Positions 6,074 through 63,969 of a DNA stretch of 64,000 nucleotides are shown one piece after another. The translations under genes and the position numbers were made by a program. A model generated the notes under the pieces. The model did not search any database. It was not told the origin of the DNA and was given only the letters and a program-made list of their open reading frames with translations. Source of the stretch: Mytilus edulis. Lineage: Eukaryota. Each line of letters starts with the position of its first letter. Positions within the stretch are counted from its first letter, which is position 1. The DNA is taken from contig NC_092349.1 in NCBI RefSeq assembly GCF_963676685.1, forward strand, positions 31,124,001-31,188,000, written 5' to 3'.

Positions 6074-6175
6074 ATAGGTGATAATGCCTTACACTTAGCT
6101 GCTAGAGATGGACAGTCCGACGTAGTGCAATGTTTACTAAAAAGAACAGATTTAGATCTTAATCAAGGAAATAGG
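6074..6175 (+). CDS. Ankyrin-repeat exon A1 (IGDNALHLAARDGQSDVVQCLLKRTDLDLNQGNR)
   Basis: ttcag|102 nt open|gtatgt. Confidence 0.9.
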
Positions 6176-7434
6176 GTATGTACTTTATTTGTTATAAGGA
6201 TTGTTTACATCGAAAAGTTACAGAGTATGATTTCACTCTGACTCTTTGTCTCTCACTTTGAATCTATAGTATTTAGAATGATAAAATAATGAATGGGATG
6301 GATAATGAACATCATATGTAAATCAATTTGCGGCAAGTATTGCAAGAAAAGTGTATTAAATTTCATAACACTATGTCAATATCAAATGAGCTTGTAATTT
6401 GAAAACAGCCAATAATTTCATTTTCAAATACAACATCATGTTATCTAATCAGAATGAAACTGTATAAAACAATAGAAAAAAATATGTGGTATGAAAGCCA
6501 AATAGACACCTACCTGTCTACAAGAGACTACATGACATAAAAGTTAATTACCAAAGGTCACCGTAGACATTAAACAATGAGCCATACCGATTCCGAATAG
6601 TAAACTAAAATCGGCGAAAACCAAATATAATATAAAGCAGCAAATGATAACCACTGATTTCGATTTAACTTTGCAAAACTAGCTCATAGATAATTTAAAT
6701 TTTTACCACTATTAACACACAAATAAACGCCAATATCTGAATAAAAAAAAAGAGACGGAAGATAACGAAGTGATGTTTGAACTGATAGGTCGAATACACA
6801 CACACAGTCATAGGAAACATGACAAAACGACATAAAGAACGAACAACAAACTACAAAACACTACATAGAAAAATAGAGACTAAGTAACTAGACCCTCACG
6901 AACAACCGAAGTGATCGCAGGTGCTCCTGAAAGGTAAACAGTTGCTGCTTTGCTGGTATCACCCATGTGTTGGTCGTGATAGTTCACATGCGGTGATAAG
7001 TATAATTGGCTATGTAAGATCATGTAAGGAAAAGAGTTGTGGATGGTGGTTACGATATAACACTTTATAGTGTTCATATAACTTGTTATGCCCCCTTTAA
7101 GTTTTCAAAAGGATGACGTCAACTATAAAACTTGGAATCCTTAGTTTGAATAGCTTCCTTGTATGATACAACCCTATCTAATTGATTCAAGATAATATAT
7201 ACATGTACAAGCTCTGGAATATAGATGATGTCAGTTTTAACTAGGGATGTGAACTCAGTAAATATTAACTTATTTAGTACTCGCTCGCAAAATCATCTAA
7301 AAAATATATATAGAAAATTATTCCAATTTTATGTATTGTGTGTAGTTGTCTCATGGAATTAAAAGCCTCAACATTATTTCCTGGGACTAGTTAGTAGTAA
7401 GTTACCAAAGATACCAGGACTATAATAGATTATA

Positions 7435-7918
7435 CAGTCCTTGGATGGTGTAAACTTCCCACTAACACCATACACCATTACACCATACACCATTACACCA
7501 TTACACCATACAACATACACCATTACACCATTACACCATACACCTTGTACCAGTACACCATACACGTTACACCTTTGCACCATACACATAAAACATTACA
7601 CCATACACCATTCGCCATTCTATCTACACGATCCGAAATTACACATAAAGCAATTACACTTCAAATATTAAGATTATTATTATTGTTTATGTTTACAATT
7701 CGAGAAAATGAAATAAAAAGAACTTCGTTTTTAACCAATGAAATGTCGTACACCATCATTCACACCATTCCCGATCACACGTTACACAATCACACAGTTC
7801 CTAAAACACCATTACACCATACACCATAGCACCATACACCTTACACCATTGCATCAAATGCCATACACCACTACACCATACACGTTTTTTTTGGGAGGTT
7901 TACACCATTCAAGGGCTG
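7435..7918. mobile_element. MITE with ~26-bp TIRs, TA target duplication and internal (TACACCAT)-like tandem repeats
   Basis: ta|cagtccttggatggtgtaaacttccc ... gggaggtttacaccattcaagggctg|ta. Confidence 0.8.
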
Positions 7919-7949
7919 TAGTACCAGACATTTTATACCATAATTAATA

Positions 7950-8271
7950 CGTTTCACAAATGATATCGGATATGTTCCTCACGTCGATACTACAAACTCC
8001 TTCCATTTCATGAATGTGACCTACCGAATAAGACTATTTACCGCATTTATTATCACATAATCAACACGACGGGTGCAACATGTGAAGCAGGATTTTCTTA
8101 CCCTTCCGGCGTTTTTTGGTGGGGTTCGTGTTGTTTATTCTTTAGTTTTCTATGTTATGTCATGTGTACTATTGTTTGTCTGTTTGTCTGTTTCTTTTTA
8201 GCCATGGCGTTGTCAGTTTATTTTGGATTTATGAGTTTGACTGTCCCTCTGGTTTCTTTTGTCCCTCTTTT
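7950..8271 (+). mobile_element. 3' end of Naiad-type PLE (RT C-terminus VSQMISDMF + 3'UTR)
   Basis: gtttcacaaatgatatcggatatgttc followed by the acacgacgggtgc repeat. Confidence 0.6.
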
Positions 8272-10101: not shown

Positions 10102-10203
10102 GACGGTAACACCCCCCTACACTTAGCTGCATTAAGAGGTAATCTCCGAATAGTTCAATTGTTATTAGAAAGAACAGACACAGATCAAAATAAAGGAAAC
10201 AAG
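10102..10203 (+). CDS. Ankyrin-repeat exon A2 (DGNTPLHLAALRGNLRIVQLLLERTDTDQNKGNK)
   Basis: tttcag|102 nt open|gtatgg. Confidence 0.92.
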
Positions 10204-16672: not shown

Positions 16673-16774
16673 GACGGTAACACCCCTCTACACTTAGCCA
16701 CATTAATGAGAAATATCCAAATGGTGAAATTACTATTAGAAAGAACAGATATAGATCCAAATACATTGAATGAG
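16673..16774 (+). CDS. Ankyrin-repeat exon A3 (DGNTPLHLATLMRNIQMVKLLLERTDIDPNTLNE)
   Basis: tttcag|102 nt open|gtatgg; overlaps ORF 16574-16804. Confidence 0.92.
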
Positions 16775-20346: not shown

Positions 20347-20448
20347 AACGGTGATTCACCGTTACACTCAGCTGTTGCAGGTAGAGATATCGAAACCACT
20401 AAGTTGTTATTGAAAAGAACAGATATATTTCCAGACATAATAGATAAG
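20347..20448 (+). CDS. Ankyrin-repeat exon A4 (NGDSPLHSAVAGRDIETTKLLLKRTDIFPDIIDK)
   Basis: ttttag|102 nt open|gtatgg. Confidence 0.88.
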
Positions 20449-20992: not shown

Positions 20993-21094
20993 TCCGGTTG
21001 CACTCCTTTCCAGTGTGCTGTTATAAGTGGACAACTCAACATAGTTCAATTGTTATTAGAGAGAACAGATGTATATCCAAACCAAAGAGATGAG
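20993..21094 (+). CDS. Ankyrin-repeat exon A5 (SGCTPFQCAVISGQLNIVQLLLERTDVYPNQRDE); alternative in-frame start at 20984
   Basis: ctgcag tcccat cag|102 nt open|gtagta. Confidence 0.85.
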
Positions 21095-21574
21095 GTAGTA
21101 AATGTAGTTACATGTATTATCCGAAAAGTCAACCCTAAATATTTGCAACGTGCTAACATTTGCATAGGAAAAAGGCCAAAAACAAAACAAACATAACATA
21201 GAAAAAAGAAACGGGAAAGGTTCAAAGAGACAGGAAATCAAAAGAAAAGCAGACCAAAGGCTATCAAAGGCTCTTTTACGATGCGAGAAAAATATCGCAC
21301 CTGTGGTTCTAAGTACGTAACAAACGAAACAATGCAAAATGACAATGATCAACATAAGTAAACAAAGAAATACTAGCAGCTTCTTACATGCAGCTTCATC
21401 CCACAGTTTACCTAATCCAAAGCTAATATCCTCATCATATTAATACTCACGTAAGGAGAGGATAGGTTTGCACTCTGAATCTAAGTAGAACAATAGACAG
21501 TAGAAATGTTTGCCTTCTAGGTTTCAGCCGACCAAATCTTTTAGTAACTGTACACCAATTTGATTTCATTTATC

Positions 21575-22508
21575 TTGTGACTGTGCTGATGAACTTGGTT
21601 TCTATATTGGCGACTTTGCAGCACTTACAATTGTCCCTTTCGCATTGTTTATAACCTCCGATTGTTGATATCTCCCGTTTAGATACTTTGGATGATACTA
21701 GAATATCTTTGAGGTTTTTTGGTCTGCGGTAAGCCAAAACGGGAGTGGCAGTTCATCAGCACAGTCACAAAGAAAAATTACAACATATTTATAACATCAA
21801 ATTGCAAAACGCAAAATTGCATTTATGTGCTTACGTGTGGAACTTGCAAATTACAATATGTTGGTGAAACAGAAACACCATTTAACATCCGACTAAATAA
21901 CCATCGGTCATATTATACAAAAGAAAGGAACTGCCCAATTACAAGACACCTTTTAAGAGCAGGACATGATTTTGAAAACGTCACATTTCAAATCATTGAG
22001 AAAAAATTGAGAGAGATTTTGGATGCACCAGTTACGAACTCTTGAACCTGATGGACTCAATGAGAGAGACGAAAAAAGATTTCAAAGCAAATCAAAACCA
22101 TAATTATCTTGAAATCATACAAATTAATTTATAAAAATTCATGCAATAAATATGAATGTGTTAAACTTTTATTCCAACTTTATGTAGTTGTAGCTACAAA
22201 CATATTTTATGCCCCAATCAATATGTTATACTGTCCCTCAACTCTTGTATAGATTAAGCTACAAAAATTGTCATGCATCCGATTTCACCTTGAGAGATGC
22301 ACTCGCCTGATGAAGCTAATTTGTTTAGCGAAATATTGCGTATTTCTATTTAACATCTAATAGAACTTTGTAATGTATCAATTAGTGTGTTTTAGTTATA
22401 TTCTCAGACATTTATATAATTTTAATTCAGTAACGGTATTAGTTTCTTTTCTCAATCTGATCCACGCTTAATTAGATTGAATGTTGATTGTTGCTATTTT
22501 TAGACATT
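21575..22508 (+). mobile_element. Neptune-type Penelope family 1, 5'-truncated copy with inverted 5' piece (21575-21745 is minus)
   Basis: GIY-YIG (CIYVLTCGTCKLQYVGET...RLNNHR), 3'UTR with hammerhead, ends in (TA)n; near-identical to 26172-27125 and 28270-28980. Confidence 0.9.
22304..22341 (+). ncRNA. Minimal type I hammerhead ribozyme, PLE family 1 3'UTR
   Basis: cgc-CTGATGA-a gctaa tttgt ttagc-GAAA-tatt/gcg. Confidence 0.7.
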
Positions 22509-22530
22509 ATATATATATATATATATATAT

Positions 22531-22860
22531 CTTACATTACATTAATTTGTAGGATCCTTTACTATAGATAATTTAGCTGATCTGTAACAATAACATCTTC
22601 ATGCCTTATATATCATGTACTGTAGTACGCCGCTAGATTAAAACTGACGTGAAAAGGTAACACATGCCCACCGAAAGCTCTTTTTTGAGAGCCCAGGTGG
22701 TCGTGTGGTCTAGCGGGACGAATGCAGTGCAGGCGATTTGGTGTCACGATATCAAAGTAGCATGGATTCGAATCCCGGCGAGGGAAGAACCAAACATTTG
22801 CGAAAGCAAATTTACAGATCTAACATTGTTGGGTTGATGTTTAGACGAGTGGTATATATA
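22531..22860 (+). mobile_element. tRNA-headed repeat unit (SINE-like) flanked on both sides by (TA)n
   Basis: tRNA-like head from 22691 with A box (tggtcgtgtggtctag) and B box (gattcgaatcc); inverted copy at 29002-29577. Confidence 0.75.
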
Positions 22861-23251
22861 TATATATATAGTCATAGGTTTGAACGTAGTTTTCAATTTA
22901 GACTCGTTTATATTTTTTTGTTTGGGCATGTATCATATTTTCCCTCCGGTTTATATGATCCGTTCATTCTATATATTGACTATTAAAATTCAAGAGTTAA
23001 TCTAAAAATGAGGGTACTTTCTCTAAAAATGAGGGTACTTTTTATATGGCCTTCCAAATACCGTTTCGATCTATAAAGGGAGATAAATCGTATTACACTT
23101 AGTCTATATATAGAAGTATGGAGCGTCATTATTCCACAATAGAAAATGCATAGTTTGCATTCAATCGTGATTTAAATTTTGAAATAAAATGTTTTTCCTT
23201 TACTTCTCGTGTAATGTCACAACCCATATTCATTTTATAAAATGGGAATAT

Positions 23252-25360
23252 TTAAAAAAATCCCCCTCCACATTCGTCTAAATGTTTGCTTAGGGGGATT
23301 TTTCTGTATTGTGGCTGCCTTATATGTTGTCTATGAATGCGCACTCTTTCTGTTACACTGTTCCCTGTTTGGCCGATATAAATTTCCTGGCAACGATTAC
23401 ATTTAATGCAATAAATTAAGTTCTCGGATTTACAGGTAATGTCTTCGTTGGTAAAAAGTGATAGACCATTAGGTATGTCCATTCCCTTGCCGACATGGAT
23501 ATACGGACATGCTCCACAACGACTATCTCGACATTTTGACACACTGAATGTTCTTTGTTGGTCGAATCGTGCTCGGGTCAATAGTCGTTTAAGGTTTTGT
23601 GGTTGCCGTTTACTTTGTAGAAGTGTTTCTGTATTAATTAAACGGCGCATCTTTTCATCCTGATCAAGAATAGGTAAATTTGCCTTTGCAACGGGAATAA
23701 TTTTAAAGTTCCGAGGATTATGTGTAATAACGAACGGTATTTTATCGTTGTTATTACTCTGCTCCTCGCAGGTGGAGCGTAGTTGGTTGGTTGGGATCTG
23801 TTTTGCCATTTGAATTCCCCTTTCTATTAAAGTCTCTGGATAGTTTTGCTTGATCAAAAATGATTGTAGTTCCTCTAGACGGTCTTCTCTCAAATGTTCA
23901 TCCTCGACTACTGTACATATTTTTCTTGCTAAACAATAGGGGATATTCCTTTTAGTATGAGATGGGTGGCACGAATTAAAATCTAAATACTGATGAGTAT
24001 CAGTACCTTTGTAAAAAATATCGGTTTTAATTTCAGTGCCATCTTTAATAACAAGAATGTCTAGAAACGGTAATTGGTTAAAATTTTCATCCTTCGTAAA
24101 TTTTATGGAGGTATACAGGTTATTTAGTATGTCCGAAAATAGTTGGAGTTCTTCGTCGGATTTGTTCCAGATAATGAAGCAATCATCAAGGTATCTTTTC
24201 CATGATAATTCGAATTCTCTTGCAAATTCAACTCCAAAATTATTTTCAACTTCTTGATACAGTCTTTGTTCAAGGAAGCCCATGACTAATGTTGCATAGG
24301 TTGGTGCAAATTTTGTTCCCATTGCTGTCCCCCGATGTTGCAAATAGTTCTTGCCATTGAAATAGAAAGAATTGTTTTCAAGAATTAGTTTAGTAGAATC
24401 GAGTATAAAGTCAATAGTGAATCGATTTGGTATTGCATCTCGATGTTTTGCAACCCAATATTGTATTGCCTCTATTCCTAAATCATGTGGAATGTTCGTA
24501 TATAGGCTTGTGACATCGAAGCTTACTAAACGAGCGTGAACCGGTGCTATTTTTGGCAGGTGTGAGAGAAAATCTATATCGTCTCTTATATAGCTCGGTA
24601 CATATTTACACAATGGTTTCAAAATTATGTCTAAAAAGTTGCTTAGTCTGTGAGTGGGACTTGCTGGACCTGCAATGATGGGTCTAAGTTTAAGATCCGT
24701 CGGTTTTTGCAGTTTTATGTATTCGTTTTGCTGAGAATTAATAGCCGATTGGATCTCCTTTGATTTATGGATTTTTGGAAGGCCATAAAAGTTACTCGTT
24801 TTCCTTTCGAAATTTTTCAAGTAATCATACTTTTTTTCCGTAGTGGCCGTTGTGTATTTGTTCAGTACGGTATTCATTCTTCTCTTGACTAGATGATCTA
24901 TATTATCAGGAATTTCTGAGTAAAATGTCGAATCATTGAGTTGTTCTTCAACTTTAATTCTATAGTAGTCTGAATCCATTATTACTATTGCCCCACCTTT
25001 ATCGGCCTGCTTAATTACTATGCTTTTATCGTTTCTTAGATTTTGGAGTGCTGACTTTTCGCCTTTAGTTAAGTTGTGGTTGACTTTAATTGGTGTAAGT
25101 GGGTAGTTGGACAAATTTTCGATATAGTCATCTAAACACTTGTTTCTTCCGGTATTTGGAATAAAGGTAGATTTGTTTCTTACTAACGAGTCGTCCTCCT
25201 CACTTTCTTTATCCGCGAAATATTCAGTGAGTCTCAATCTTCGACAAAATTTCGACATGTCTGCTTTAAGTTCATCATGATCCACAGAGGGAGTTGGTAT
25301 AAATTTTAAACCCCTTTTAAGCAATTTCAGTTCATTGTCATTAAATACTCTGTTGGACAA
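23252..25360 (-). CDS. Penelope-like reverse transcriptase + GIY-YIG endonuclease; premature TAA in a homopolymer, frame continues to about 23129
   Basis: KQADKGG, FYGLPKIHK, LRPII, FDVTSLYTNI, GTAMG, RYLDD, CRDSRCGAC linker, LIYCIKC..YIGQT..RVRIHR. Confidence 0.93.
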   Translation of the reverse strand: MSNRVFNDNELKLLKRGLKFIPTPSVDHDELKADMSKFCRRLRLTEYFADKESEEDDSLVRNKSTFIPNTGRNKCLDDYIENLSNYPLTPIKVNHNLTKGEKSALQNLRNDKSIVIKQADKGGAIVIMDSDYYRIKVEEQLNDSTFYSEIPDNIDHLVKRRMNTVLNKYTTATTEKKYDYLKNFERKTSNFYGLPKIHKSKEIQSAINSQQNEYIKLQKPTDLKLRPIIAGPASPTHRLSNFLDIILKPLCKYVPSYIRDDIDFLSHLPKIAPVHARLVSFDVTSLYTNIPHDLGIEAIQYWVAKHRDAIPNRFTIDFILDSTKLILENNSFYFNGKNYLQHRGTAMGTKFAPTYATLVMGFLEQRLYQEVENNFGVEFAREFELSWKRYLDDCFIIWNKSDEELQLFSDILNNLYTSIKFTKDENFNQLPFLDILVIKDGTEIKTDIFYKGTDTHQYLDFNSCHPSHTKRNIPYCLARKICTVVEDEHLREDRLEELQSFLIKQNYPETLIERGIQMAKQIPTNQLRSTCEEQSNNNDKIPFVITHNPRNFKIIPVAKANLPILDQDEKMRRLINTETLLQSKRQPQNLKRLLTRARFDQQRTFSVSKCRDSRCGACPYIHVGKGMDIPNGLSLFTNEDITCKSENLIYCIKCNRCQEIYIGQTGNSVTERVRIHRQHIRQPQYRKIPLSKHLDECGGGFF

Positions 25361-26029: not shown

Positions 26030-26071
26030 TTCACCTGAAGATTGTTATTTAAACATGAAAGTACTAGTGAA
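26030..26071 (+). ncRNA. Minimal type I hammerhead ribozyme, PLE family 2 3'UTR
   Basis: ttcac-CTGAAGA-t tgtt attta aaca t-GAAA-gtac-TA/gtgaa; perfect 5-bp stem I, palindromic AGTACT stem III. Confidence 0.78.
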
Positions 26072-44086: not shown

Positions 44087-44155
44087 TATTAATTAAAAAA
44101 ACCAATCAATGTGTTTAAAGCTCTTGAAATCCTACAAACTATAACCCATGAACAA

Positions 44156-44186
<31 letters not shown>

Positions 44187-45038: not shown

Positions 45039-45140
45039 GATGCTGATACTCCCTTACATTTAGCTGTTGAAGGTGGATATCTAGACATAGTCAAATTGTT
45101 ATTAGCACAAACAGATATAGATCCAAACAAAGTAAACGAG
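45039..45140 (+). CDS. Ankyrin-repeat exon A8 (DADTPLHLAVEGGYLDIVKLLLAQTDIDPNKVNE)
   Basis: ttttcag|102 nt open|gtatga. Confidence 0.92.
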
Positions 45141-46700
45141 GTATGATATGTAGTACAAGTCAGTATTGAAATCCATTTTTATTCAGCTTAGACAACCATC
45201 AAATTCAAGCCCTGTTGACGATAATGCTAGTAATATATCTACCCACTTTTGCAACTTTCTATAACATTATAATGTCAAATGATGCTATGAAGCAAAACAA
45301 ATAAAATGCTTAAACATACTCGCTTTTGGTTTTTTGAACTTTGCTCATGATGCCATATGTGGAGCAGGATCTGCTTACCCTTTCGGAGCACCTAAGCTCG
45401 CCCCCAAGTTTTGATAGGGTTCTCGTTGCTGAATCTTTTGTGTTCGATATTGTGTCGTGTGTAGTATTATTTGTCTGTTTGTCTTTCATTTTTTGTCAGT
45501 TTATTTTTGACCTATGAGGTGAATGTCCTTGTGGTATCTTTCGCCCCTCTTGTATTTAGGGATCAGGTAGTGACTTAAGCATGCATGTTTCAGATTTTGA
45601 TGAAAAATTGAATAAATCATCTAAATAACATGTTATAATAAAAAAGTCCGTTTCAAGAAGATGCGGTTGTTATGGAAAAAAAGCCATATGAATATTACAA
45701 AGTAACAAGTAATGATCTTTAAGATAAAATCCCCATTTTTTACTGTTTCCATTAGTAAAATGGCGTATTAAATTATAATCCTGGTACCTTTGATAACAAT
45801 TAAGCATACATAAATTTTGGTATTTTATACTTTGCTGTTAACAATGGTTAAGTGTCAGTTTACTTAGGATGCCACATGTGGAGAATGATCTGCTTACTCT
45901 TTCGGAGCACCTACGATCACCCCAAAGTTTTTGTAGGGTTCTTGTTGCTGTTCTATTTGGTGTCGGTTTTACTGCTATTTGTTTGTTTGTCTTTCACTTT
46001 TTTGGCCACGTCTTTGTCAGTTTACTTTTGACCTATGAAATTGAATGTCCCTGTGATATTGTTCGCCCCTCTTTTATTTAGGGATCAGGTAATGACTAAA
46101 ACATGAATGTCTAAGATTTTGATAAAAGAAAAAAATGCATAAATCATCTAAATAACATGTAACACGTAATGTAGGTTTACATATAATCAACAATTTTTCA
46201 CTGTTTCCATTAGACATGTTTATATTTTTTTCGTTGGGGGTTTCTGGTTAATATAATCCATTCATCCTATTGTGACTCTTCAAAATTCAAGAGTCTATCC
46301 TAAATTGAGGTTGATCATTATAGATTCAAAATATGTTTTTTTCAAATTAACAGTTTCAGAGGAATTGCGTTTATCAAAGCAGTCTCTATATGCATACGTT
46401 TACTTTGCGTTTAGTAAGTTATAGGTTATTCATTGGAATCATCAAATTATTTATGTAAAGTCTGTCATTATCAAACCTTTGTGTAATACTCTGAATATTG
46501 CAACTGTTTTCATTATGATGACGTAAATTAAAATAACAGTTTCAGAGGAATTGCGATTTATTAAAACAGTCACGGTATGCATACGTTTACTTTGTGTTTA
46601 GTAAGCTATAAGTTGTTGATTGATATCATCACATTTTGTGTGTAAAGGCTGTCGTGTTAATACCTTCGAATTATACTGTGATTATTGCAACTGTTTTCAG

Positions 46701-46792
46701 TTTTATGATACTCCCTTACATTTAGCTGTTAAATGTGAATATCTAGACATAGTCAAAAAAGAACAGATATAAATTTAAACACAGTAAATGAG
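46701..46792 (+). pseudogene. Damaged ankyrin exon A9, 10-nt deletion causing frameshift and TAA
   Basis: 92 nt between intact ttttcag and gtataa; ttgttattag missing after gtcaaa. Confidence 0.85.
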
Positions 46793-47519
46793 GTATAATA
46801 TGTAGTACTAGTCAGTATTGAAATCCTTTTGTATTCAGCTTAGACAATCATCAAATTCAAACCCTGTTGATGATGTTGCTAGTAGAATATGTACACAACT
46901 TTGCAACATACTATGATATTGAAATGTCATAAGATGCTATGAAGTAAAACAAGTAAAAAAGCTTAAACATACATATATTTTGGTTTATTTTACTTGCTTT
47001 GAAGTGTCATTTTGCTTAGCATGGAACATGGGGAGCAGGATCTACATTTATAGAATTGATCATAATATGTTGTTAATATATTATGAATTAGAGTTCAATT
47101 ATAAACAAAAACACAAAAACATTTGTTTTATTTAAATATCAGAATCCTAAATTTTCGTTGTATATTAATGATTCTTATATCAAACAATTTTCATGCAGAC
47201 ATTGTGTTGGAAACCATAGAGAAATGCAATCAAGATTAATGAAGGAAAAATATACACAAATGTAGTGGCATCTAATAAAATGGGTAGCCGTTGGTTATTT
47301 AAAGATGCGCATCACATTTTTGAGTCTTTTTTGAATAGATAAATAAAAGTTGCAGTTACTCCTAAGAAAATTTAATTTAAAGAGGTAAATCATGAAAAAA
47401 CGTTGAAGACGCCATGGTCACATGTTAATTTTATTATACTAGAAAGACTGCTTCAAGTCTTGAAGTCTTCCTTAATTCTGACACAGATGGACTCTTCTCA
47501 GTTGATATGTTATGCTCAT

Positions 47520-48713: not shown

Positions 48714-49790
48714 ATCTAGAATGAGATCTGATAAACTGCAGTTTCTCCTGATTATATTCTATTATCTAGAATGAGATCTGATAAACTACAGCTTCTCCTG
48801 ATTATATGCTTTTATAAAGAATGAGATTTGATAAAATACAGCTTTTCCTAATAAACTAATATCTAGAAAGAGATCTCATAAACTACAGCCTGCCCTGATT
48901 ATATACTTTTCTAAAGAATGAGACTTGATAAACTACAGCTTTTTCTGATTAGATACTATTTTCTAGAATGAGATCTGATAATCTACAGGTTGCGTATATT
49001 ATCTTTCTAAATATTAGTTTATCAGGAAAAGCTTGCGCTTATTATATAGTATCTGACAATTATCTTGAATGTGATTGGATAAACTACAGCTTGTCCTTGT
49101 CATATACTATTTTCTAGAATGAAGTCTGATAAACTACAGCTTGTCCTTATACTATTTTCTAGAATGAAGTCTGATAAACTACAGCTTGTCCTTATACTAT
49201 TTTCTAGAATGAAGTCTGATAAACTACAGCTTGACCTTTGTAAATACTATCTGACTATTATCTAGATGGAGATCGGATAAACTACATCTTGTCCTGATTA
49301 TATACTATTATCTATTATGAGATCTTATTAAACTGCAGCTTGCCCTGATTATATACTATTATCTACATTGAGATCTGGTAAACTAAATCTTGCCCTGATT
49401 ATATTATAATAGATTACAGCTTGCCCTAATTATATTTTATTATCTTACATCAGATCTGATAAACTACAGTATTTTCTAATTATATTCTTTTATCTAGAAT
49501 GAGATCAGATACAGTACCGCTTGTCCTTTTTGTATACTATTCTCTAGATCCTATCTAGAATGAGATCTGATAAACTACAGTTTTTCCTTTTTATAAACGA
49601 TTATTTAGATATTATCTAGAATGAGCTTTGATGAACTACAGCTTTTCTTGATGATATACTTGTATCTATAATGAGATCTGATAAACTACTTTTTCGGATT
49701 ATATACTATTATCTAGAATGAGATCAGATACACTACAGATTGTCTTGTTTATACATTATAATCTAGAATGAGATCTGATAAACTACAGCT
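48714..49790. repeat. Minisatellite, ~50-bp unit, about 20 degenerate copies
   Basis: Consensus atctagaatgagatctgataaactacagcttgtcctgattatatactatt. Confidence 0.9.
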
Positions 49791-50707: not shown

Positions 50708-52165
50708 GATAATACTGTGAATTTGTTGATGCTAGAAGCTTGATATCTTAAAGTCTCTACATTTGATATTTTTAAGCAAAATCAGGATAATTTTACAATC
50801 TTTACAACTCTGAAATACATGCAAAAGAGTAGTTTGATGATCAAAACCCTAGTTGTATTTAAGAATGTATTCATTTATATATATTTATATAATTATTATA
50901 TGATTTGCATATTAGGAAAAACATTAATAGGACTCCAATATTTGTTCTTGACGTTTGTTTTTTTTTCGATAGACGACGTTCGCCGAACTACTTTTCGTAA
51001 CCAATGTTAACAAGATGGCGTCGATTATAAAACAAGCCGGATAGACGTTATTTTCACCTCGCGTTAATCGTTAAAAACATAACACATTCGTTTGAAGGAT
51101 AATTACAGTTTTTGTAGTTTATATTTTATCAGATAGCAAATTTCATGGAATACATATGTTTGCGTTAACCAACAGGTTTTTTTTTATAATACTGTGAAAT
51201 TTGTTGATGCTAGAAGGCAGCTGTTTAAAAAGAACTTGATATCTTAAAGTCTCTGCATTTTATTTTTTTTAGCAAAATCAGGATAATTTGACAATCTTTA
51301 CAGCTCTGAAATACATGCAAAAAAGTATAGTTTGATGATCAAAACCCTAGTTGTATTTAAGAATGTATTCATTTATATATATTTATATAATTATTATATG
51401 ATTTGCATATTAGGAAAAACATTAATAAGATTGGTCGAGAGGACTCCAATATTTGTTCTTGATGGTTTTTTTTTTCGATAGACGACGTTCGCCGAACTAC
51501 TTTTCGTAACCAATGTTAACAAGATGGCGTCGATTATAAAACAATCCGGATAGACGTTATTTTCACCTCGCGTTAATCGTTAAAAACATAACACATTCGT
51601 TTGAAGGATAATTTGTAGTTTATATTTTATCAGATAGCAAATTTCATGGAATACATATGTTTGCGTTAACCAACAGTTTTTTTTGATAATACTGTGAAAT
51701 TTGTTGATGCTAGAAGGCAGCTGTTTAAAAAGAACTTGATATCTGCATTTTATTTTTTTAAGCAAAGTCAGGATAATTTGACAATCTTTACAGCTCTGAA
51801 ATACATGCAAAATAGTATAGTTTGATGATCAAAAACACTAGTTAATATTAAAGAATGTATTTATTTATATATAATTCTGATATGATTTACATATTATCAA
51901 ATATATTTATATGATTGGTCGAGAGGACTCCGGTAGTTGTACTTGACGTTGTTTATTTTTCGATAGACGATGTTCTCCGAACTTCTTTTCGTAACCAACG
52001 TAAACAAGATGGCGGCGATTATAAAACAATTCGGGCGGACGTTGTTTCACCTCGCGTTAATCGATAACATAACATATTCGTTTGAAGGATAATTACAGTT
52101 TTTGTAGTTGATATTTTATCAGATATAAAAATTTCATGGAAAACATATGTTTGCGTTAACCAACA
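50708..52165 (+). repeat. Tandem repeat, three units of about 480-500 bp
   Basis: ataatactgtgaa(a)tttgttgatgctagaag recurs at about 50709, 51186, 51686. Confidence 0.9.
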
Positions 52166-53954
52166 AATATATTCATATGCCAGGTCTATTTAAAGAAACT
52201 GATATAGAATTTACGTGTGATAGAGGTTGCGTGTGTGGAAAAATAAATTCCTTATCTCCTTATATTTTAAAGAATATAAGGATTAAACGCTTTTTTGAAG
52301 GAATTTATTGGTGTAGTTTCTTTATACGATTAAGCTTTTAAAACCAGGCAAAATTGAATATGAAGGTAACCCAGATACTTCGGATCAGTAAGCAGTTTAT
52401 ATATACTCTCCTGTTTAAACATATTATAAAGCGTATAAAACTCGACTAATATCATTCCTCGCGCCTTAGAGATTTAAACTCTGTATCGTTAACGTTTCCT
52501 TTTACAAAACCAATAAAAAGAACACAGGCATTCTAGTATTTTGTCTCTGTAAACTGTAGAACAGCATATATAAATTTACTGTTTTCTATTAATAAAACAA
52601 GCCTGATCAAAATTAATTTAGGCGTGTAAAATTCTATAAGCAATAACCCATTAGCGAATTACCTATATATAATAAAGGTCTATATAACTGTCCTTCGTGT
52701 TCTTTCGTTTATTTGTACTGTCACGTAATGTTGTCATATTAGCGGTATTTGTAAAATTGCCTAATAAGCAGTAGGGTTGGCTGGCGATAAAACCAGGTTC
52801 AAACCACAATTTTTTCATAAACTGTCTTGTTCCAAGTCAGGAATATGACAGTTGTTATCAACTACTCCGTTTGGTATTTGTTTTTGTACGAGTATAGGTA
52901 AATGCTATACTGGAGTAAATAGGCTATTTATTCATATAAAAATCAATGAAATTTGAAATTATTTAGAATTTTAGTCTAGAAACTTTCTTACCCAGAACTT
53001 ATTTATATCATCCCTAATATCATCCAAAGTTTTTATTTCTGGTGTCTCAGAACCCCCCACGTGGTACTATGGTAACGGCCAGAATTCAAAGCTGGCGTTT
53101 GAACGCGAAACTTCAAGAGCCTGGCGCACCCCAAAGAACTAGACAAATGAATGAAAATAAAGTTGTATTTGGTTGACAAAGATGTTATCTTTCCCGTAAC
53201 AGCTGTTAAAAGTGCCCTTTTATAATAAAAAATAACAGAAATGACATACAATCTAACCGTGGCCACACCAAAAGTCAACTATCTTGTCAATTTTTAAAAT
53301 GTTGTATTCATTTTAAAAACAAGAAACAACAATCTTGGTATTCATGAGCTTTCTAAGAATAAATATGCCAAGTTTTCAAGAGATCAATAAATTATTTTAA
53401 TGTGGTGTGCCAATGCGATCTTCATAGTTATGATATTCAAGTCCTTACGTGGCGACATTTAAACACTGAATTGAATCAGATCAATTATTCCCCTTTTTGG
53501 TGTAAATGTGCCGGAAAAGAAATAATCGACATTTTGATAGATTTTGACTAGAAATAGACACATTATAGATATAGAATAATGTTATTTTTTTCATTTTTAC
53601 TCTTGAGGTGTTAATGCATCTTAAAAAGTATCACCGTGCATACGAAGAGAAAAAAGGGGGGATGCGCTAACGTTATACCTTGTTTTAAGGAGCTTTCGTA
53701 ACCCAATGTGTATTTCTAACTGCACATGTGTGTCATATGTGTCGATTGTAAATAAAATTATCTTACTTACTTTCTTAAATTTATTTATCATTCGGTCTTA
53801 ACGACTTTTAGATTACCAAGGTTTGGCATATAGCATACGTTTACTTTGCGTTTAGTAAGTTATAGGTTATTCATTGAAATCAACAAATTATTAATGTAAA
53901 TTCTGTCATTATCATACCTTCGTATAATACTGTGATTATTGCAACTGTTTTCAG

Positions 53955-54056
53955 GAGGATGATACTCTCTTACACTTAGCTGTTAAAGGTGGATATATCG
54001 ACATAGTAAAATTGTTATTAGAACTAACAGATATAGATCCAAACAAAGTAAATGAG
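53955..54056 (+). CDS. Ankyrin-repeat exon A10 (identical to A7)
   Basis: ttttcag|102 nt open|gtatta. Confidence 0.88.
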
Positions 54057-56319
54057 GTATTAAATGTAGTTCTAGTCAGTTTGTTAATCCTTTGTTAATT
54101 CAGCACAGACAACCATCAAATTCCAACTCCGCAGAATGTTGCTAGTAAAATATATACCCAACTTTTTTACGTACTTAAGTCTTGAAACGCGAAAAGATGT
54201 ACTGATGCAAAACAAACCAAATGTTAAGATATGAGTATCTTCCGTCTATTTACATTTAGCTTTTAAAGGGGTAGTTTTAAAGAACTAGTTGTTAAATTCT
54301 GTGTCATTTGCTGTCTTATGGAGAATTGCCTTGTTCGCAATCATGCCACACCTTCTCATTTGATAGAGATATTTTTTTTGTAGCAGGTCGTTTTCTTTGT
54401 TATTAACTTTCCATTCAGCATTTGTACAGATGTATTTAACATAATTTAAAATACACGATCCAATGTATGACACTTTTGTTTCTCCTGCTATGTTATATAC
54501 TCAGACATTTATGAATGGAATTTAAGAATTAGTCGATGTGGATAGTTATATGTATAAGGTATTTAGTTTTTAGTTATGTTCATATCACACACTCTCAAAC
54601 TTTACGCAGCCAGACAGATAATCAATTTCGATTTTATATTTCGTCTTATGTGACTTTACATTTTATGACGTGAAACACACAAAGCAGTGCCTGTGGTTTT
54701 TAAATTTGAGAGATGCTTATGGTTTTTTTGTTAAATATTTTTTTGTTTTGAGATTGTGACACAGTGATGACTGATGTACCCTTATTTTGCCTAGTTTACT
54801 TTTTATGCCTGTTTTGTTCACGCAACATTATAGTTGATGAAGTTTTAATATGTTTAGTTTATTTTTTTCTCAGGTAAGAATGTCTGGAGACTTATAAAGC
54901 GTGAAGGAAAATTTTATAGTTAATAGTAGATTCATTTTGTATGTTGCCCTTATTATTGTTGAATGGGACTTGAAAGGAATGTTCACAGATGAACAAATAC
55001 ACGAGAAGTCTGTACATATTTGAACGTATTGGTCATAAATTTCTTGACATTTTCGTTTCTTACTTATAATTGACTTTCAATTTATTGGCTTCGAGCGTTT
55101 CTGGTACAAATAAATCAACAACAGGGATTGAAACATTGTATCGTTAACGTATGCCTTTTAAAAAAAGGGAACAAAGCCTCAAATGTAGTTTTTTCATTGA
55201 ATAAGGTATACGAAATATTTTGGCGGTTATTTTTTTGGCGAATTAATTTTTTTTATCAATACGTTTGCATATGCACTTTTAAATAGGCGGAATTTATTTT
55301 GGCGATTTTGTTCCATCCGCGAAAATAAGCGAAAATTTACACACCGCAAAAATAACCTGCTATACGGTATATTAATTAAAAAAACCAATCAATGTGTTTA
55401 AAGCTCTTGAAATCCTACAAACTATAACCCATGAACAAGTTTTATATATATATATATATATATATTAACAAGGTCTTTACTTATACAAAGTTTGACTCTA
55501 AATTTAACATGTATAAAAGCTTGAAAAAAAAACAACAGATTTCAATTCCTTTTTGAAAACTAAAATGTTAACACTGTTGAAAAACAATCAGATTTTTCTA
55601 TTAATCATATTTGAAAAACTATTGTTTTATTTTCAGTCATAATATATTCTAAATTAAACAGTAATACCACTGTAAAAATGTTTTGAAATGTTCAATTCTA
55701 TAATGTTCTTTCTTAATCACTTACGTTACATTTATAGGCATTTTGTAAAAAAGTTTCATAACTTTGAATATCAAACTGGTTTTTAACTTCATTTCCCAAT
55801 ACTCACTTTCCATTCTTGGATTTTTTTCTTGCAACATTGGATGGTTCAATACTGATATGGCATTACCCTAACACATAACTTCTAAATTAGAATAAGATTT
55901 ATTTCAAAATTGTATTTAAATACTTTTATTTGTGATCCCCGTTTATTAAACTGTGGCCAACGAAAGTAGATCTTTTAGGTCCTTTATATTCTACGCTTTT
56001 CCGTAAGAACGGTTAGCTTTTTTAACATTTAAATTTGATGAAGGGGTTTTTATTTTAATACATGGCATCTAAAGAAATGAAGACTCGATTTTTAAGTCGC
56101 TTGACCTTGTTTTATATTCTCACGCTACATTTTATTTACGTAATTCAAATTAACAGTTTCGAAGGAATTGCGATTTATTAAAATGGTCTCTCTATATGCA
56201 AACGTTCACTTTTTGTTTAGTTAGCTATAAGTTGTTCATTGATATTATTACTTTTTTTGTGTAAAGGCTGTCGTTTTCTTACCTTTGTATACTACTGTGA
56301 TTATTGCAATTGTTTTCAG

Positions 56320-56421
56320 GATGCTGATACTCCCTTACATTTAGCTGTTGAAGGTGGATGTCTAGACATAGTCAAATTGTTATTAGAACAAACAGATATA
56401 GATCCAAACAAAGTAAACGAG
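56320..56421 (+). CDS. Ankyrin-repeat exon A11 (DADTPLHLAVEGGCLDIVKLLLEQTDIDPNKVNE)
   Basis: ttttcag|102 nt open|gtatga; overlaps ORF 56239-56427. Confidence 0.92.
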
Positions 56422-58293
56422 GTATGATATGTAGTACAAGTCAGTATTGAAATCCATTTTTATTCAGCTTAGACAACCATCAAATTCAAGCCCTGTTGAC
56501 GATAATGCTAGTAATATATCTACCCACTTTTGCAACTTTCTATAACATTATAATGTCAAATGATGCTATGAAGCAAAACAAATAAAATGCTTAAACATAC
56601 TCGCTTTTGGTTTTTTGAACTTTGCTCATGATGACACATGTGGTCCAGGATCTGCTTATCCTTTCGGAGCACCTAAGCTCAACCCCACGTATTGATAGGG
56701 TTTTCGTTGCTGAATCTTTATGGTTCTATATTGTGTCGTGTGTAGCATTGTTTGTCTGTTTGTCTTTCATTTTTTTGTCAGTTTAGTTTTGACCTATGAG
56801 TTTGAATGTCCTTGTGGTATCTTTCGCTCTTCTTATATTTAGGGATCAGGTAGTGACTTAAGCATGAATGTCTCAGATTTTGATGAAAAATTGTATAAAT
56901 CATCTAAATAACATGTTATAATAAAAAAGTATGTTTCAAGAAGATGCGGTTGCAATGGAAACAGAACCATATGAATATTACAAAGTAACAAGTAATGATC
57001 TTTAAGATAAAATCCCCAATTTTTACTGTTTCCATTAGTAAAATGGCGTATTAAATTATAATCGTGGTACCTTTGATAACAATTAAGCATACATACATTT
57101 TGGTATTTTATACTTTGCCGTTAAGTGTCAGTTTGCTTAGGATGCCACAAGTGCTGCATAATCTGCTTACCCTTTCGGATCACCTACGATCACACCCAAA
57201 GTTTTTGTAGGGTTCTTGTTGCTAAGTCATTTGTGCTCTATTTTGTGTCGTTTTTACTGTTATTTGTTTGTTTGTCTTTCACTTTTTTGGCAATATCTTT
57301 GTCAGTTTACGTTTGACCTATGCATTTGCATGTGCCTGTGGTATTGTTTGCCCCTCTTTTATTTAGGGATCAGGTAGTGACTAAAACACGAATGTCTCAG
57401 ATTTTGATGAAAAATTGCATAAATCATCTAAATTACATGTTATAAAGAAAAAGTACGTTCCAATAAGATGCTGTTGCTATGTAAACAGAGCCATATGAAT
57501 ATTACAAAGCAACACGTAATGAAGGTTAACATATAATCAACAATTTTTCACTGTTCCCATTTGACATGTTTATATTTTTTTCGTTCGGGGTTTAGGGTTA
57601 ATATAATCCGTTCATCCTATTGCGACTCTTCAAAATTCAAGAGTCTATCCTAAATTGAGGTTGATTATTATGGATCCCAAATACCGTTTTGATTTCTTAC
57701 AGCACTGCATATATATTAATTGCTAAATCCGGATACGGTGTACCAATTTTTGCTCCTCGTGTTCTCGGTATACAATCTTGTCAGCAAATTTATTGTTTTT
57801 TGTTTGGTATTGAATTAATAATTAAGATCTTTTTCATTACATCTGTTGATCTGTTTATTTGTCAATCACCGTGGCAGTCATCAGGGTCTAAAAACAACCG
57901 TTGTTCGACATGCTAGTCAAATATGTTTTTTTTTTCAAGTTGACAGTTTCAGAGGAATTTTGATTTATTAAAGTCGACTATATATGCATAATTTTAATTT
58001 GTGTTTAGTAAGTTGTAGGTTTTTTTTGAAATCATCAAAATATTTATGTAAAGTCTGTCATTATCATACATTTGTGTAATATTCTGAATATTGCGACTGT
58101 TTTCAGTATGATGACGTAATTCAAATTAACAGTTTCAGAGGAATTGTGATTTATTAAAACAGTTACTTTATTCATACGTCCACTTTGTGTTTAGTTAGCT
58201 ATAAGTTGTTCATTGATATCATCATATTTTTTGTGTAAAGGCTGTCGTTTTCTTATCTTTGTATAATACTGTGATTTTTGCAACTGTTTTCAG

Positions 58294-58395
58294 TATGAAG
58301 ATACTCTCTTACACCTAGCTGCTGAAAATGGATATCTAGACATAGTCAAATTGTTATTAGAAAGAACAGATATAGACCCAAACAAAGTAAATAAG
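58294..58395 (+). CDS. Ankyrin-repeat exon A12 (YEDTLLHLAAENGYLDIVKLLLERTDIDPNKVNK)
   Basis: ttttcag|102 nt open|gtatga. Confidence 0.92.
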
Positions 58396-59614
58396 GTATG
58401 ATATGTAGTACTAGTCAGTATTAAAATCCTTTTTTTCAGCTTCAACCATTAAATCCAAACCCTGCTGATGATGTTGCTAGTAAAATATGTACACAACTTT
58501 GCAACATACTATAATATTGAAATGTCAAAAGATGTTTTGAAAAAAAAGTAAAATGCTTAAGCATACATACATTTTGGTATATTATTCTTTGCTGTTAAGT
58601 GTCAGTTTACTTAGGATGCCACATGTGGAGCAGGATCTGCTGAACCCTTTCGGAGCACCAACGATCACCCCCACGTTTTGTAGGGTTCTTGTTGCTGAGT
58701 CATTTGTGTTCTATTTTATGTCGTTTTTACTGTTATTTGTTTGTTTGTCTTTCACTTGTTTGGCCATGTCTTTATCAGTTTACCTTTGACCTACGAGTTT
58801 GAATCTCCCTGTGGTATCGTTCGCTCCTCTTTTTCATAAATCATCTAAATTACATGTTTTAAAGAAAAAGTACGTTTCAACAAGATGCTGTTGCTATGGA
58901 AACAGAGCCACATGAATATAAAAAAGGAACACGTAATGAAGGTTTACATTTAATCAACAATTTTTCACTGTTTTCATTAGACATGTTTATATTTTTTTCG
59001 TTCGGGGTTTTGGGTTTATATAATCAGTTCATCCTATTGCGACTCTTTAAAATTCAAGCGTCTATCCTAAATTGAGGTTGATTATTATGGATTTCAAATA
59101 CCGTTCCAATATTTGCTCCTCATGTTCTCGGTTTACAATCTTGTCAATTTTGTGTTTAATTGAATTGATAATTAAGATCTATTTCGTTACATCTGTTTAT
59201 CTGTTTATGTGTCAATCACCGTGGTAGTCAGCAGGGTCTAAGAACAACCGTTGTTCGACATGCTAGTCAAATATGTTTTTTTTCAAGTTGACAGTTTCAG
59301 AGGAATTTCGATTTATTAAAGTCGTCTATATATGCATAATTTTAATTTTTTGTGTTTAGTAAGTTGTAGGTTTTAATTGAAATCATCAAATTGTTTATGT
59401 AAAGTCTGTCATTATCATACCTTTTGTGTAATACTCTAAATATTGCAACTGTTTTCAGTGTGATGACGTTATTCAAATTAACAGTTTCAGAGGAATTGCG
59501 ATTTATTAAAAAAGTTACTTTATGCATAGGTTCACTTTGTGTTTAGTTAGCTATAAGTTGTTCATTGATATCATCACATTTTGTGTAAAGGCTGTCGTTT
59601 TAGTACCGTTTTAG

Positions 59615-59677
59615 TATCTATACATAGTCAAAATGTTATTTAAAAAAACAGATATAGATCCAAACAATGTAAATGAG
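59615..59677 (+). pseudogene. Half ankyrin exon A13 (YLYIVKMLFKKTDIDPNNVNE); original acceptor and helix 1 deleted
   Basis: 63 nt homologous to codons 14-34, donor gtatga intact, preceded by duplicated cgttttagta. Confidence 0.8.
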
Positions 59678-62600: not shown

Positions 62601-63134
62601 CAATACATCATAAATCTTTATATAATTGACCGTTTTGGTTATAAATCTCTTCATATTTTTTATATTTACTTATCATCGACTTTCAAATAATTGGCTTTGA
62701 GCGTTCCTGGTACAGATAAATCAACAATAAGGATTGACACGCTGTATCGTTATCGTATAATTTGTCAAAACCAATACAGAGAACACAACGGGAAATGTAG
62801 TTTTTCTCTGTATACTCTAGAACAGCATAAATCAATTTATCGTTTTATATTAATAAAAAAGTCTGATGACAATTTATCAATGTGAATAAGGTCTTAAAAG
62901 TCTACAAACAATAACACATGGACGAATGACAAGTTTCATATACAACATGTATATTATTACCTATCCAAAATTTTGCTTTAAATTTTACATTTATAAAAGG
63001 TTGAAAAAAGGAACGGATTTCAATTCTATTTTTGAAAACTAAAATGTTAAGACTGTTGAAAAACATCACATTTTTAGTCTGTCATCTTTAGACCTTCGCA
63101 TAATACTGTCATTATTGCAACCAACTGTTTTCAG

Positions 63135-63236
63135 GATGATGATACTCTCTTACACTTAGCTGTTAAAGGAGGATATATCGACATAGTCAAATTGTTCTTA
63201 GAACAAACAGATATAGATCCAAACAAAGTAAATAAG
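63135..63236 (+). CDS. Ankyrin-repeat exon A14 (DDDTLLHLAVKGGYIDIVKLFLEQTDIDPNKVNK)
   Basis: ttttcag|102 nt open|gtatga. Confidence 0.92.
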
Positions 63237-63867
63237 GTATGAAATGTAGTTATAGTCAATATTTTAGTGATGTGTTAATTTCGCTCTTTAACTTTTGCGT
63301 TAACACGTAACACATTTTTAAGAAATATATTAATTTAGTGTTTTTAATTAAACTTATTTGTGATTACCGTTTGATTAAGATGTGACCAGCGACAGTATAT
63401 TTCGACCATTACATTTTATGACATGGACTTAATTGCACATTTGTCTTCTGACAATGGGGAGGACAATAATACACCTGGCAATGAGAATGTTATTATATAC
63501 ACATTCAAGTAAAACTTAATGCTCATTTTCAGTCTCAGAGTAATAACGATTTAAAAAAAGGTTTTTAAATAAATAATTTAAAGCGTGCATCCTTACGGTT
63601 TTTTATTTAAATTATCAAAAAGTAAAATCACAAAATATCTACCTCCTAGGTAAATTCAAAACGGAAAGTAGTCCGTTATCAAATATCAAAATCAAAAACT
63701 CAAAGACATCAAACGAATGGATGACAACTGTCATATTCCTGACTTTGTACAGGCATTTTCTTATGTAGAAAATGGTGGATCAAACCTGGATTTTAATCAA
63801 ATTATTTTGTAAAGTTTGTCATTTTTAGACCTTAGTATAATACTGTGATTATTGAAACTGTTTTCAG

Positions 63868-63969
63868 GATGATGATACTATCTTACACTTAGCTGTTAAA
63901 GGTGGAAATCTTCACATAGTCAAATTGTTATTAGAAAGAACAGATATAGATCCAAACAAAGTAAACAAG
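63868..63969 (+). CDS. Ankyrin-repeat exon A15 (DDDTILHLAVKGGNLHIVKLLLERTDIDPNKVNK)
   Basis: ttttcag|102 nt open|gtatga. Confidence 0.92.

Follow-up and report, generated by a model that had tools for sequence, protein, structure and literature searches.

A tandem array of single-repeat ankyrin exons in Mytilus edulis, probably the N-terminal part of a ROCO gene ending in death-fold modules

Bivalves lack adaptive immunity and depend on greatly expanded innate gene families. A stretch of 64,000 nucleotides of Mytilus edulis DNA (contig NC_092349.1, positions 31,124,001 to 31,188,000; the whole stretch is called the window) contains a series of small exons, each encoding a single ankyrin repeat. 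To which gene do these exons belong, and does their regular design allow one gene to give rise to many receptors? A preliminary description, made from the sequence alone, had tentatively placed them in a bivalve recognition or immune gene, diversified by exon skipping and unequal crossover. The host is indeed a bivalve; how the remainder of the proposal fared is described below.

A first scan of the window for AG, a 102-nucleotide open frame and GT gave 29 candidates on the forward strand and 18 on the reverse strand. Profile searches with nhmmer and hmmsearch identify exactly 13 intact ankyrin exons, with E-values of 1e-16 to 1e-23; the preliminary description had counted at least 13. All are on the forward strand, and the same searches found no intact ankyrin units on the reverse strand. 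Each exon is 102 nucleotides long, in phase 0/0, bordered by AG and GT, and encodes one repeat of 34 residues. The five single exons tested all pass the Pfam profile PF00023 (Ank), with 28–39 bits against a gathering score of 21.1, and the TPLH and LLL signature of the roughly 33-residue ankyrin repeat is present. The repeat is a 34-residue variant, with one additional residue in a loop.

The first five exons are old, at 6074–6175, 10102–10203, 16673–16774, 20347–20448 and 20993–21094. The first of these is divergent and scores 28 bits with the Ank profile; the second scores 39 bits, its closest relatives elsewhere being only 73–78% identical. The fifth has the donor gtagta, and the genome contains no other match to it at E ≤ 1e-6. 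The young-type acceptor context, ctgttttcag, first appears at the exon 39994–40095, which is followed by the exon at 42670–42771, identical in DNA sequence to that at 53955–54056, and the exon at 45039–45140, 98% identical to that at 56320–56421. The remaining three, at 58294–58395, 63135–63236 and 63868–63969, encode repeats 1 to 3 of the RefSeq protein discussed below; the last two are types A and B, respectively, of a young two-exon unit. Identity to the young consensus is 44–62% for the 5' exons versus 74–94% for the 3' exons, in agreement with the earlier view of divergent 5' exons and 3' near-copies. The fold-determining positions are kept across all repeats, and variation falls on surface positions, concentrated at 1, 11, 12, 14–17, 27, 31, 32 and 34.

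Between the intact exons lie the dead and half units that had also been noticed. The pseudo-exon at 46701–46792 (forward strand) retains its acceptor and donor, but a 10-nucleotide deletion causes a frameshift and stop codons, and its inclusion would poison a transcript. The 3' 63 nucleotides of an ankyrin unit are found at 59615–59677 on the same strand, open and with an intact donor; this half unit is absent from the RefSeq model. An 18.9-kb gap in the array (21094 to 39994) is occupied by Penelope-like RT/GIY-YIG elements, of which the intronic copies at 21700–29000 contain RT and GIY-YIG open reading frames and inverted arms of 1.3 kb. A block of 5.5 kb is present twice on the forward strand, at 40681–46160 (with exons 42670 and 45039) and at 51962–57440 (with exons 53955 and 56320 and the mini-exon bearing the annotated start codon), the two copies being 97% identical. 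In the third exon unit, adjoining this block, identity between 46336–47043 and 57929–58638 is 85%. Rfam gave no match at the gathering threshold in the whole window.

As had been suspected, the array runs past the window edge, with nine further intact exons downstream; three more are found upstream. The full array thus has 25 intact ankyrin exons over 106 kb, 24 of them of 102 nucleotides and one of 105. All 25 are in phase 0/0, so that every subset stays in frame, as the preliminary description had stated. Tandemly duplicated, symmetrical exons that are uniform in length and hold a single repeat each characterize the exon-cassette repeat receptors of the brown-algal ROCO or NB-ARC-TPR type, and this is the design found here.

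The RefSeq protein XP_071177577.1 (1393 residues, 12 ankyrin repeats; PF00023 at 2e-82 and 266.7 bits over 11 stretches) annotates the 3' part of the array. Its annotated first coding mini-exon, of ten codons, maps exactly to 56955–56984, and its 12 ankyrin exons map exactly from 58294 to 100624 (coordinates beyond 64000 continue the window numbering). Mapping of the same protein places a cap exon at 112330–112413, a linker at 114397–114489, the Roc exons at 121450–134940, the COR exon at 135802–137046 and two putative death-domain exons at 139188–139451 and 147438–147731, in this order 3' of the array and all on the forward strand. The cap exon was recovered only through the RefSeq protein; a search with paralogue peptides did not find it.

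In the Roc region, the P-loop GxxxxGKS/T, DFGGQ and THSD motifs can be read from the sequence in exons 121450, 123002 and 134836, as the G1, G3 and G4 motifs of a ROCO protein. Pfam scores at the locus are low: for XP_071177577.1, Roc reaches 18–21 bits (18.4 for the exon by itself), under the cut-off of 27; COR-A reaches 25.3 bits (E-value 1.6e-5), under the cut-off of 35.3; and Death (PF00531) in the terminal exon reaches 16.5 bits versus a cut-off of 22.6. The first death-like exon has no Pfam match; searched individually, neither it nor the Roc and P-loop exons gave anything significant. Though sub-threshold, the per-exon matches to Roc, COR-A and Death are in the correct order. Among 24 paralogues, Pfam recognizes COR-A in 18, Death in 16 and Roc in 16. 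A search of PDB sequences with the COR exon alone gave no match, a family profile being needed; this profile matches the Roc-COR region of LRRK2 at 4e-9 and the death domains of CRADD (7.6e-9), FADD, RIPK1 and ankyrin (8e-9 to 1e-4).

The predicted fold agrees with these assignments. The M. galloprovincialis orthologue has an AF2 model (pLDDT 72), with which Foldseek finds 35 matches at E ≤ 0.001; every one is a Roco protein, LRRK1 among them at 4.7e-15. The model superimposes on the RocCOR structure of C. tepidum (3dpu) with a TM-score of 0.64 over 527 columns, and on a COR domain (3dpt) with a TM-score of 0.73; it also contains two helical bundles at residues 753–941. From the family profiles and this predicted fold, XP_071177577.1 probably belongs to the Roc, COR-A and Death families, with COR placed C-terminal of Roc as in ROCO proteins. 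A death domain appears to be present in the family and in the second module, and the first module is a putative one.

The preliminary description had pointed to the flanking sequence as the place to look for NACHT, ROC-COR, TIR or death-fold domains; ROC-COR and death-fold exons are indeed present downstream on the same strand. No NACHT or other STAND NTPase was found from −80 kb to +204 kb by tblastn with a STAND-bearing relative, and no kinase domain in the 284 kb around the locus by tblastn with a kinase-bearing paralogue; both searches matched Roc-COR-death exons only. Upstream of the array there is no long open reading frame other than those of transposable elements. XP_071177577.1 has no matches to LRR, kinase or WD40 domains and ends in the death-fold modules. 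The N-terminal kinase, HEPN, Ig and STAND domains known from paralogues were not found at the locus; HEPN_DZIP3 (PF18738) occurs among the retrieved relatives.

The best structural and profile matches of the Roc-COR region are LRRK1, LRRK2 and the prokaryotic Roco proteins of C. tepidum and M. barkeri, and G4 has the THxD form of Roc, but sequence identity is only 10–15%. With neither LRRs before Roc nor a kinase and WD40 domain after COR, the gene is not a member of the LRRK family. The animal ROCO protein DAPK1 (death-associated protein kinase 1) likewise has ankyrin repeats, Roc, COR and a C-terminal death domain, in this order. The mussel gene differs from it in having two death-fold modules instead of one, the 34-residue repeat variant and many paralogues, whereas DAPK1 is conserved as a single copy; neither a kinase nor a calmodulin-binding region was found in the 284 kb. 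Lacking the N-terminal Ser/Thr kinase and calmodulin-regulatory segment, it is not a member of the DAPK family, nor is it an orthologue of DAPK1.

The gene is part of a large lineage-specific family. The M. edulis genome contains at least 96 paralogues of its COR exon, all 96 scored candidates (of 466 candidates) having E ≤ 5e-58, and there are at least 146 single ankyrin exons of the 34-residue type, nearly all on chromosome C6. Sister arrays are located on this chromosome at 11.9, 15.1–15.3, 20.9–21.1, 27.5–30.1 and 57.8 Mb. A profile of 22 ankyrin exons, searched against 1.84 billion representatives, retrieved only giant generic ankyrin proteins, none with the T-D-x-D-P-N loop of the family, and is thus uninformative. 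We found no published description of a mussel ROCO-death family in the literature searched.

The array bears marks of turnover in the germline. In its 3' part, units of exon plus intron are duplicated in tandem with 90–97% identity. Among the A/B units, identity is graded from 88 to 97%, and one unit is recombinant: exon 68035 is a chimera of A and B with the crossover inside the exon, a direct footprint of unequal crossover. The M. trossulus orthologue model has a different set of 18 repeats, unlike in both number and kind, on a Roc-COR-death body that is 91–97% identical, in a comparison between automatic gene models rather than aligned genomes. Germline turnover is supported by the unit duplications, the chimeric exon and the differences from M. 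trossulus. Divergence of the exons (0.118) is half that of the flanking introns (0.26–0.28). Mean pairwise dN/dS of the ankyrin exons is about 0.5, over 34 codons each, and provides no evidence of diversifying selection.

We therefore favour, with a probability of about 0.7, the reading that the exons form the N-terminal ankyrin array of an M. edulis ROCO gene with the order ankyrin repeats, cap, linker, Roc GTPase, COR, death, death. The ankyrin array may act as a sensor that binds proteins or other ligands, or as an autoinhibitory module, whose repeat number and surface would evolve fast in the germline by unequal crossing-over between in-phase exons. Roc-COR would be a GTP-dependent dimerising switch, and the death domains may bring in death-fold adaptors to signal cell death or an innate immune response, as an NLR-like receptor family would. 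Such an immune role is suggested by the architecture and the family expansion.

How much of the array is part of the functional gene is less clear-cut. The coding sequence of XP_071177577.1 takes in only three of the 13 window exons; the other ten, the last of which is exon 56320, together with the three upstream of the window, precede the annotated start codon. These 13 exons might be an untranscribed, decaying remnant or a dead neighbouring copy, with the 12 from 58294 onward functional, which we consider possible but on balance unlikely. Apart from their absence from the RefSeq model, the frameshifted unit at 46701 and 19 kb of retroelements break up this upstream part, and orthologue models of M. 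galloprovincialis are without any ankyrin repeats. However, all 13 retain open frames, AG/GT borders and fold-determining residues (L6, H7, A9, V18, L20–22, T25, D26 and D28) despite identities of 44–62%; at 68% A+T, this would not be expected after long neutral decay. The annotated 5' end is itself doubtful, since the mini-exon at 56955 belongs to an intronic motif that occurs in four copies; a ten-codon start in such a copy is typical of ab initio model completion. Many models of the family have starts that fall within an ankyrin repeat or a read-through acceptor tract. A search of the locus with paralogue peptides found no credible 5' first exon.

A further reading is somatic or combinatorial diversification, as proposed for Dscam and the brown-algal LRR-ROCOs, in which in-phase ankyrin cassettes are skipped or chosen, possibly with allele-specific arrays; this locus, together with the sister loci on chromosome 6, would then supply the mussel with a repertoire of ROCO-death sensors. 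We consider this improbable. The exon symmetry would permit it, and any transcript spanning the pseudo-exon and the half exon must skip both. Two isoforms of a paralogous M. edulis ANK-Roc-COR gene (XP_071143848.1 and XP_071143849.1) differ solely by one 33-residue repeat, and alternative splicing is reported for brown-algal ROCO genes in which every LRR has an exon to itself (PMC11378527). Against it, a single RefSeq isoform was recovered for the locus, and its use of 12 consecutive exons argues against mutual exclusion of the Dscam type. In four RNA-seq runs, five of six young exons are covered, at no more than 1.4x, in two runs only and confined to the exons. No exon-exon junction reads above the reporting limit were found in these runs. 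Such a result is no evidence of silence, and short reads are ambiguous between near-identical exons. The gene may be barely or conditionally expressed; the repeat exons are probably included constitutively for the most part, with low expression in the samples examined. Of the two routes to diversity initially proposed, unequal crossover is supported by the chimeric exon and by arrays that differ between the annotated models of sister species, and exon skipping has so far found no support at this locus, with its one recovered isoform and no junctions.

It is very improbable that errors of assembly, for instance haplotypes placed in tandem, gave rise to the young near-identical units and in particular to the 5.5-kb pair. 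Mussel genomes are highly heterozygous, and 97% identity is within the range of allelic divergence, but identity falls in the adjoining third unit, where one copy has a pseudo-exon and the other an intact exon; the A/B units are graded and include a recombinant, and analogous independent amplifications are seen in the M. trossulus model. Least credible of all is that this is a conventional ankyrin gene, cytoskeletal or scaffolding in function, that has a conserved one-to-one orthologue and owes its one-repeat-per-exon structure to ancestry: Ankyrin-1 does head the PDB sequence matches of the ankyrin part, and in vertebrate ANK1–3 most repeats lie in single 99-nucleotide exons, but here Roc-COR-death-death follows rather than ZU5-UPA-death, the COR loci are numerous, and repeat content differs even between the M. 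edulis and M. trossulus models.

The gene resembles the expanded NLRs of invertebrates and fungi, with their ANK, TPR, WD40 or LRR arrays, in combining an NTPase switch with a putative fast-evolving solenoid sensor and a putative death-fold effector. It also shares with them repeats that turn over by unequal recombination and a large expansion within its lineage. The switch is different, a Roc-COR GTPase in place of a NACHT or NB-ARC STAND ATPase. Similar in design are the brown-algal LRR-ROC-COR genes of Ectocarpus and Saccharina, for which diversifying selection has been reported (PMC11378527). In both, solenoid repeats precede Roc-COR, symmetrical exons of constant size encode one repeat each, exons are duplicated in tandem or shuffled, and the family has expanded within its lineage; both are proposed immune receptors. 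The algal repeat is an LRR of 72 nucleotides in phase 2, whereas the mussel repeat is an ankyrin repeat of 102 nucleotides in phase 0, in an animal host and with two probable death domains after COR. The two systems are certainly independent in origin.

The locus presents an animal ROCO-death gene with a putative ankyrin sensor made of single-repeat, in-phase exons that duplicate and recombine; the family to which it belongs numbers about a hundred Roc-COR loci or more. What is known of ROCO proteins comes chiefly from LRRK2 and DAPK1, and little is understood of how they sense. The same architecture has been proposed as a source of receptor diversity in brown algae, and it therefore appears to have evolved twice. 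If the exons were also used combinatorially, the gene would be an independently arisen animal counterpart of the brown-algal LRR-ROCO system. With its exons resolved, the locus lends itself to asking whether recognition in a death-domain pathway with a GTPase switch is tuned by splicing or by variation in repeat number.

In the following, window coordinates are used, extended below 1 and above 64000 for the flanks; adding 31,124,000 gives the genome coordinate on the forward strand of chromosome C6. A mechanical scan for AG, an open frame of 102 nt and GT yields 29 candidates on the forward and 18 on the reverse strand. With DNA and protein profiles derived from the first scan hits, 13 intact ankyrin (ANK) units are found on the forward strand of the window and none on the reverse, starting at positions 6074, 10102, 16673, 20347, 20993, 39994, 42670, 45039, 53955, 56320, 58294, 63135 and 63868. 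Each is exactly 102 nt long, is in phase 0 at both ends and is bordered by a polypyrimidine-AG acceptor and a GT donor. Pfam Ank (PF00023) scores above gathering in all five exons searched one by one, confirming the single-repeat ankyrin exons of the preliminary description. At 34 residues the repeat is a variant form, longer by one residue in the loop that follows the second helix; its helix-packing residues are fixed, and variation is mainly at positions 1, 11, 12, 14–17, 27, 31, 32 and 34.

The dead and half units described as interspersed are also present on the forward strand. The unit at 46701–46792 has lost 10 nt, leading to a frameshift and stops, with both splice sites kept, and that at 59615–59677 consists of the 3' 63 nt, with an intact donor. 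As described, the 5' exons are old, sharing 44%–62% identity with the young consensus, the 3' exons are young (74%–94%), and the array runs past the window edge. Profile searches of 284 kb around the window locate 25 intact units between −5647 and 100728, all on the forward strand; three precede the window and nine follow it, and the final unit is 105 nt long.

Downstream of the array, open frames on the same strand give weak Pfam matches to Roc and COR-A. The COR exon retrieves Mytilus proteins whose annotation names a COR or death domain, the best of them 97%–99% identical and from M. galloprovincialis and M. edulis. RefSeq protein XP_071177577.1 (P0366, 1393 amino acids) aligns exactly with the locus, all on the forward strand. 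An ATG mini-exon of ten codons (56955–56984) is followed by 12 consecutive ANK exons (starting at 58294, 63135, 63868, 66571, 67343, 68035, 68727, 69499, 71004, 92188, 94104 and 100624), a cap exon (112330–112413), a linker exon (114397–114489), three Roc exons (121450–121704, 123002–123523 and 134836–134940), a single COR exon of 415 codons (135802–137046), two small exons and two death-fold exons (139188–139451 and 147438–147731), after which comes the stop. About 25 kb further on, an open frame at L018:8593–9051 of the 3' flank (172593–173051, forward strand) encodes a von Willebrand factor type D domain (PF00094, 1.4e-11) and is probably the next gene.

Roc motifs at the locus include a P-loop, DFGGQ and a Roc-type THSD. 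On its own, XP_071177577.1 stays under the Pfam thresholds for Roc, COR-A and Death; the assignment is based not on these scores but on relatives. Of 24 aligned paralogues, 18 have a Pfam COR-A hit, 16 a Death hit and 16 a Roc hit, and their profile matches Roc-COR of LRRK2 (4e-9) as well as prokaryotic Roco and the death domains of CRADD, FADD and RIPK1. When the AlphaFold2 model of the M. galloprovincialis orthologue (91%–97% identical to this locus, pLDDT 72) is submitted to Foldseek, all 35 matches at E ≤ 0.001 are Roco proteins, with a TM score of 0.64 for C. tepidum RocCOR. The array is bounded and is part of a ROCO-death gene, the kind of bivalve gene predicted: Roc, COR and death folds lie downstream on the same strand. 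Kinase, LRR, HEPN, Ig and STAND exons are absent from the locus.

The annotated 5' end of XP_071177577.1 is doubtful, because its ATG mini-exon belongs to an intronic motif that occurs four times (45672, 56955, 57479 and 58896) and many gene models of the family start within a repeat or in an acceptor tract that is read through. The motif, about 36 nt long with an ATG at its start and a GT donor at its end, recurs in introns of young units. The RefSeq coding sequence takes in only three of the 13 intact window exons (58294, 63135 and 63868). Although deeply diverged, the 13 exons upstream of the annotated ATG have kept their open frames and splice signals and every fold-determining residue, and exon 10102 matches exons from paralogous C6 arrays about as closely as it matches its own neighbours; judged from sequence, this favours long-term constraint rather than decay. 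The gene is partly annotated and uncharacterised.

Self-comparison reveals that a 5.5-kb block (40681–46160) recurs at 51962–57440 with 97% identity, the adjoining unit having only 85%, and that, from 63 to 71 kb, units of 0.7–1 kb share 88%–97% identity. The young part is a two-exon unit in tandem repeats, with A exons at 63135, 66571, 68727 and 71004 and B exons at 63868, 67343 and 69499, all on the forward strand. Exon 68035 follows an A-type intron (92%–97% identity) and in its 5' half matches three of the four A exons exactly, while its 3' half (96%–100%) and downstream intron (94%–96%) are B-type. It is a recombinant with its breakpoint inside the exon, the footprint of the unequal crossover earlier proposed to shape the array or, alternatively, of conversion. 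Young exons diverge by 0.118, about half the 0.26–0.28 of their flanking introns, with a mean pairwise dN/dS of about 0.5; the signal is that of constraint or homogenisation, and positive selection is not demonstrable from it. Comparing automatic gene models rather than aligned genomes, the M. trossulus orthologue (XP_063448193.1, 1728 amino acids) has 18 repeats, partly of different kinds and with internal amplifications of its own, and a Roc-COR-death body with 91%–97% identity.

Other elements occur in the introns. Penelope-like retroelement copies occupy 21700–29000 of a long intron, including a reverse-strand open frame of 735 amino acids (23255–25459) that encodes RVT_1 and, at the C terminus, GIY-YIG, as well as additional GIY-YIG frames and 1.3-kb inverted arms (26262–27577 and 27670–28986, 97.7% identical). 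Between the 5.5-kb block copies, the intron contains a tandem array at 48714–49787, in which a unit of some 50 nt occurs about 14 times with 73% matches. The first block copy ends inside 45310–46213, a region that, like the entire window (1–64000), has no Rfam match at the gathering threshold. On the reverse strand of the 3' flank, a reverse-transcriptase-bearing element (L005:884–2585, or 64884–66585) is inserted directly upstream of exon 66571; its open frame reaches the acceptor region, and the acceptor is not destroyed.

A search of indexed RNA runs finds none that contains the stretch. Six young exons (L005:2400–7300) were compared with the raw reads of four RNA-seq runs. Depth is at most 1.4×, confined to exon bins in two of the four runs, and the read strand is that expected for forward-strand mRNA in a dUTP-type library; exon–exon joints are absent at the reporting limit. 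Given this trace depth and absence of joints, the gene is weakly expressed at best in the sampled runs, at a depth too low for splicing patterns. One paralogue has two annotated isoforms differing solely by one 33-residue repeat, an annotation-based pair that the skipping of one repeat exon could explain. Combinatorial splicing of the ANK exons, the exciting part of the preliminary description, is unproven.

Of 466 candidate matches to the COR exon in this genome, at least 96 are strong. Paralogues of this exon are densely clustered on C14 (0.9–4.6, 13–16 and 55–69 Mb), C12 (24–82 Mb) and C8 (72–78 Mb), and in many of them the match contains a single in-frame stop, which may point to an intron or a pseudogene. 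The 34-residue ANK exon type has 146 matches, almost exclusively on C6 (11.9, 15.2, 20.9–21.1, 27.5–30.1 and 57.8 Mb), where every group sits upstream of a same-strand COR exon. Relatives carry alternative amino-terminal modules: 33-residue ANK, HEPN_DZIP3, Ig with a transmembrane segment, kinase or STAND. Three older M. edulis or M. galloprovincialis models (P0262, P0324 and P0342), in which pieces of these ROCO genes are fused to unrelated genes (copper monooxygenase, choline transporter and RhoGAP), are likely annotation chimeras.

In the literature searched, no account of this mussel Roc-COR-death family was found. Published work mentions ROCO domains in TIR and death proteins of Aplysia (PMC9334734) and also in sea anemones (PMC5094078), and brown-algal ROCOs have one LRR per exon (PMC11378527). 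The domain order resembles that of DAPK1; however, the mussel locus lacks the kinase and is not a DAPK. A Roc-COR-death gene that bears an array of ANK exon cassettes is a variant architecture of a known type.
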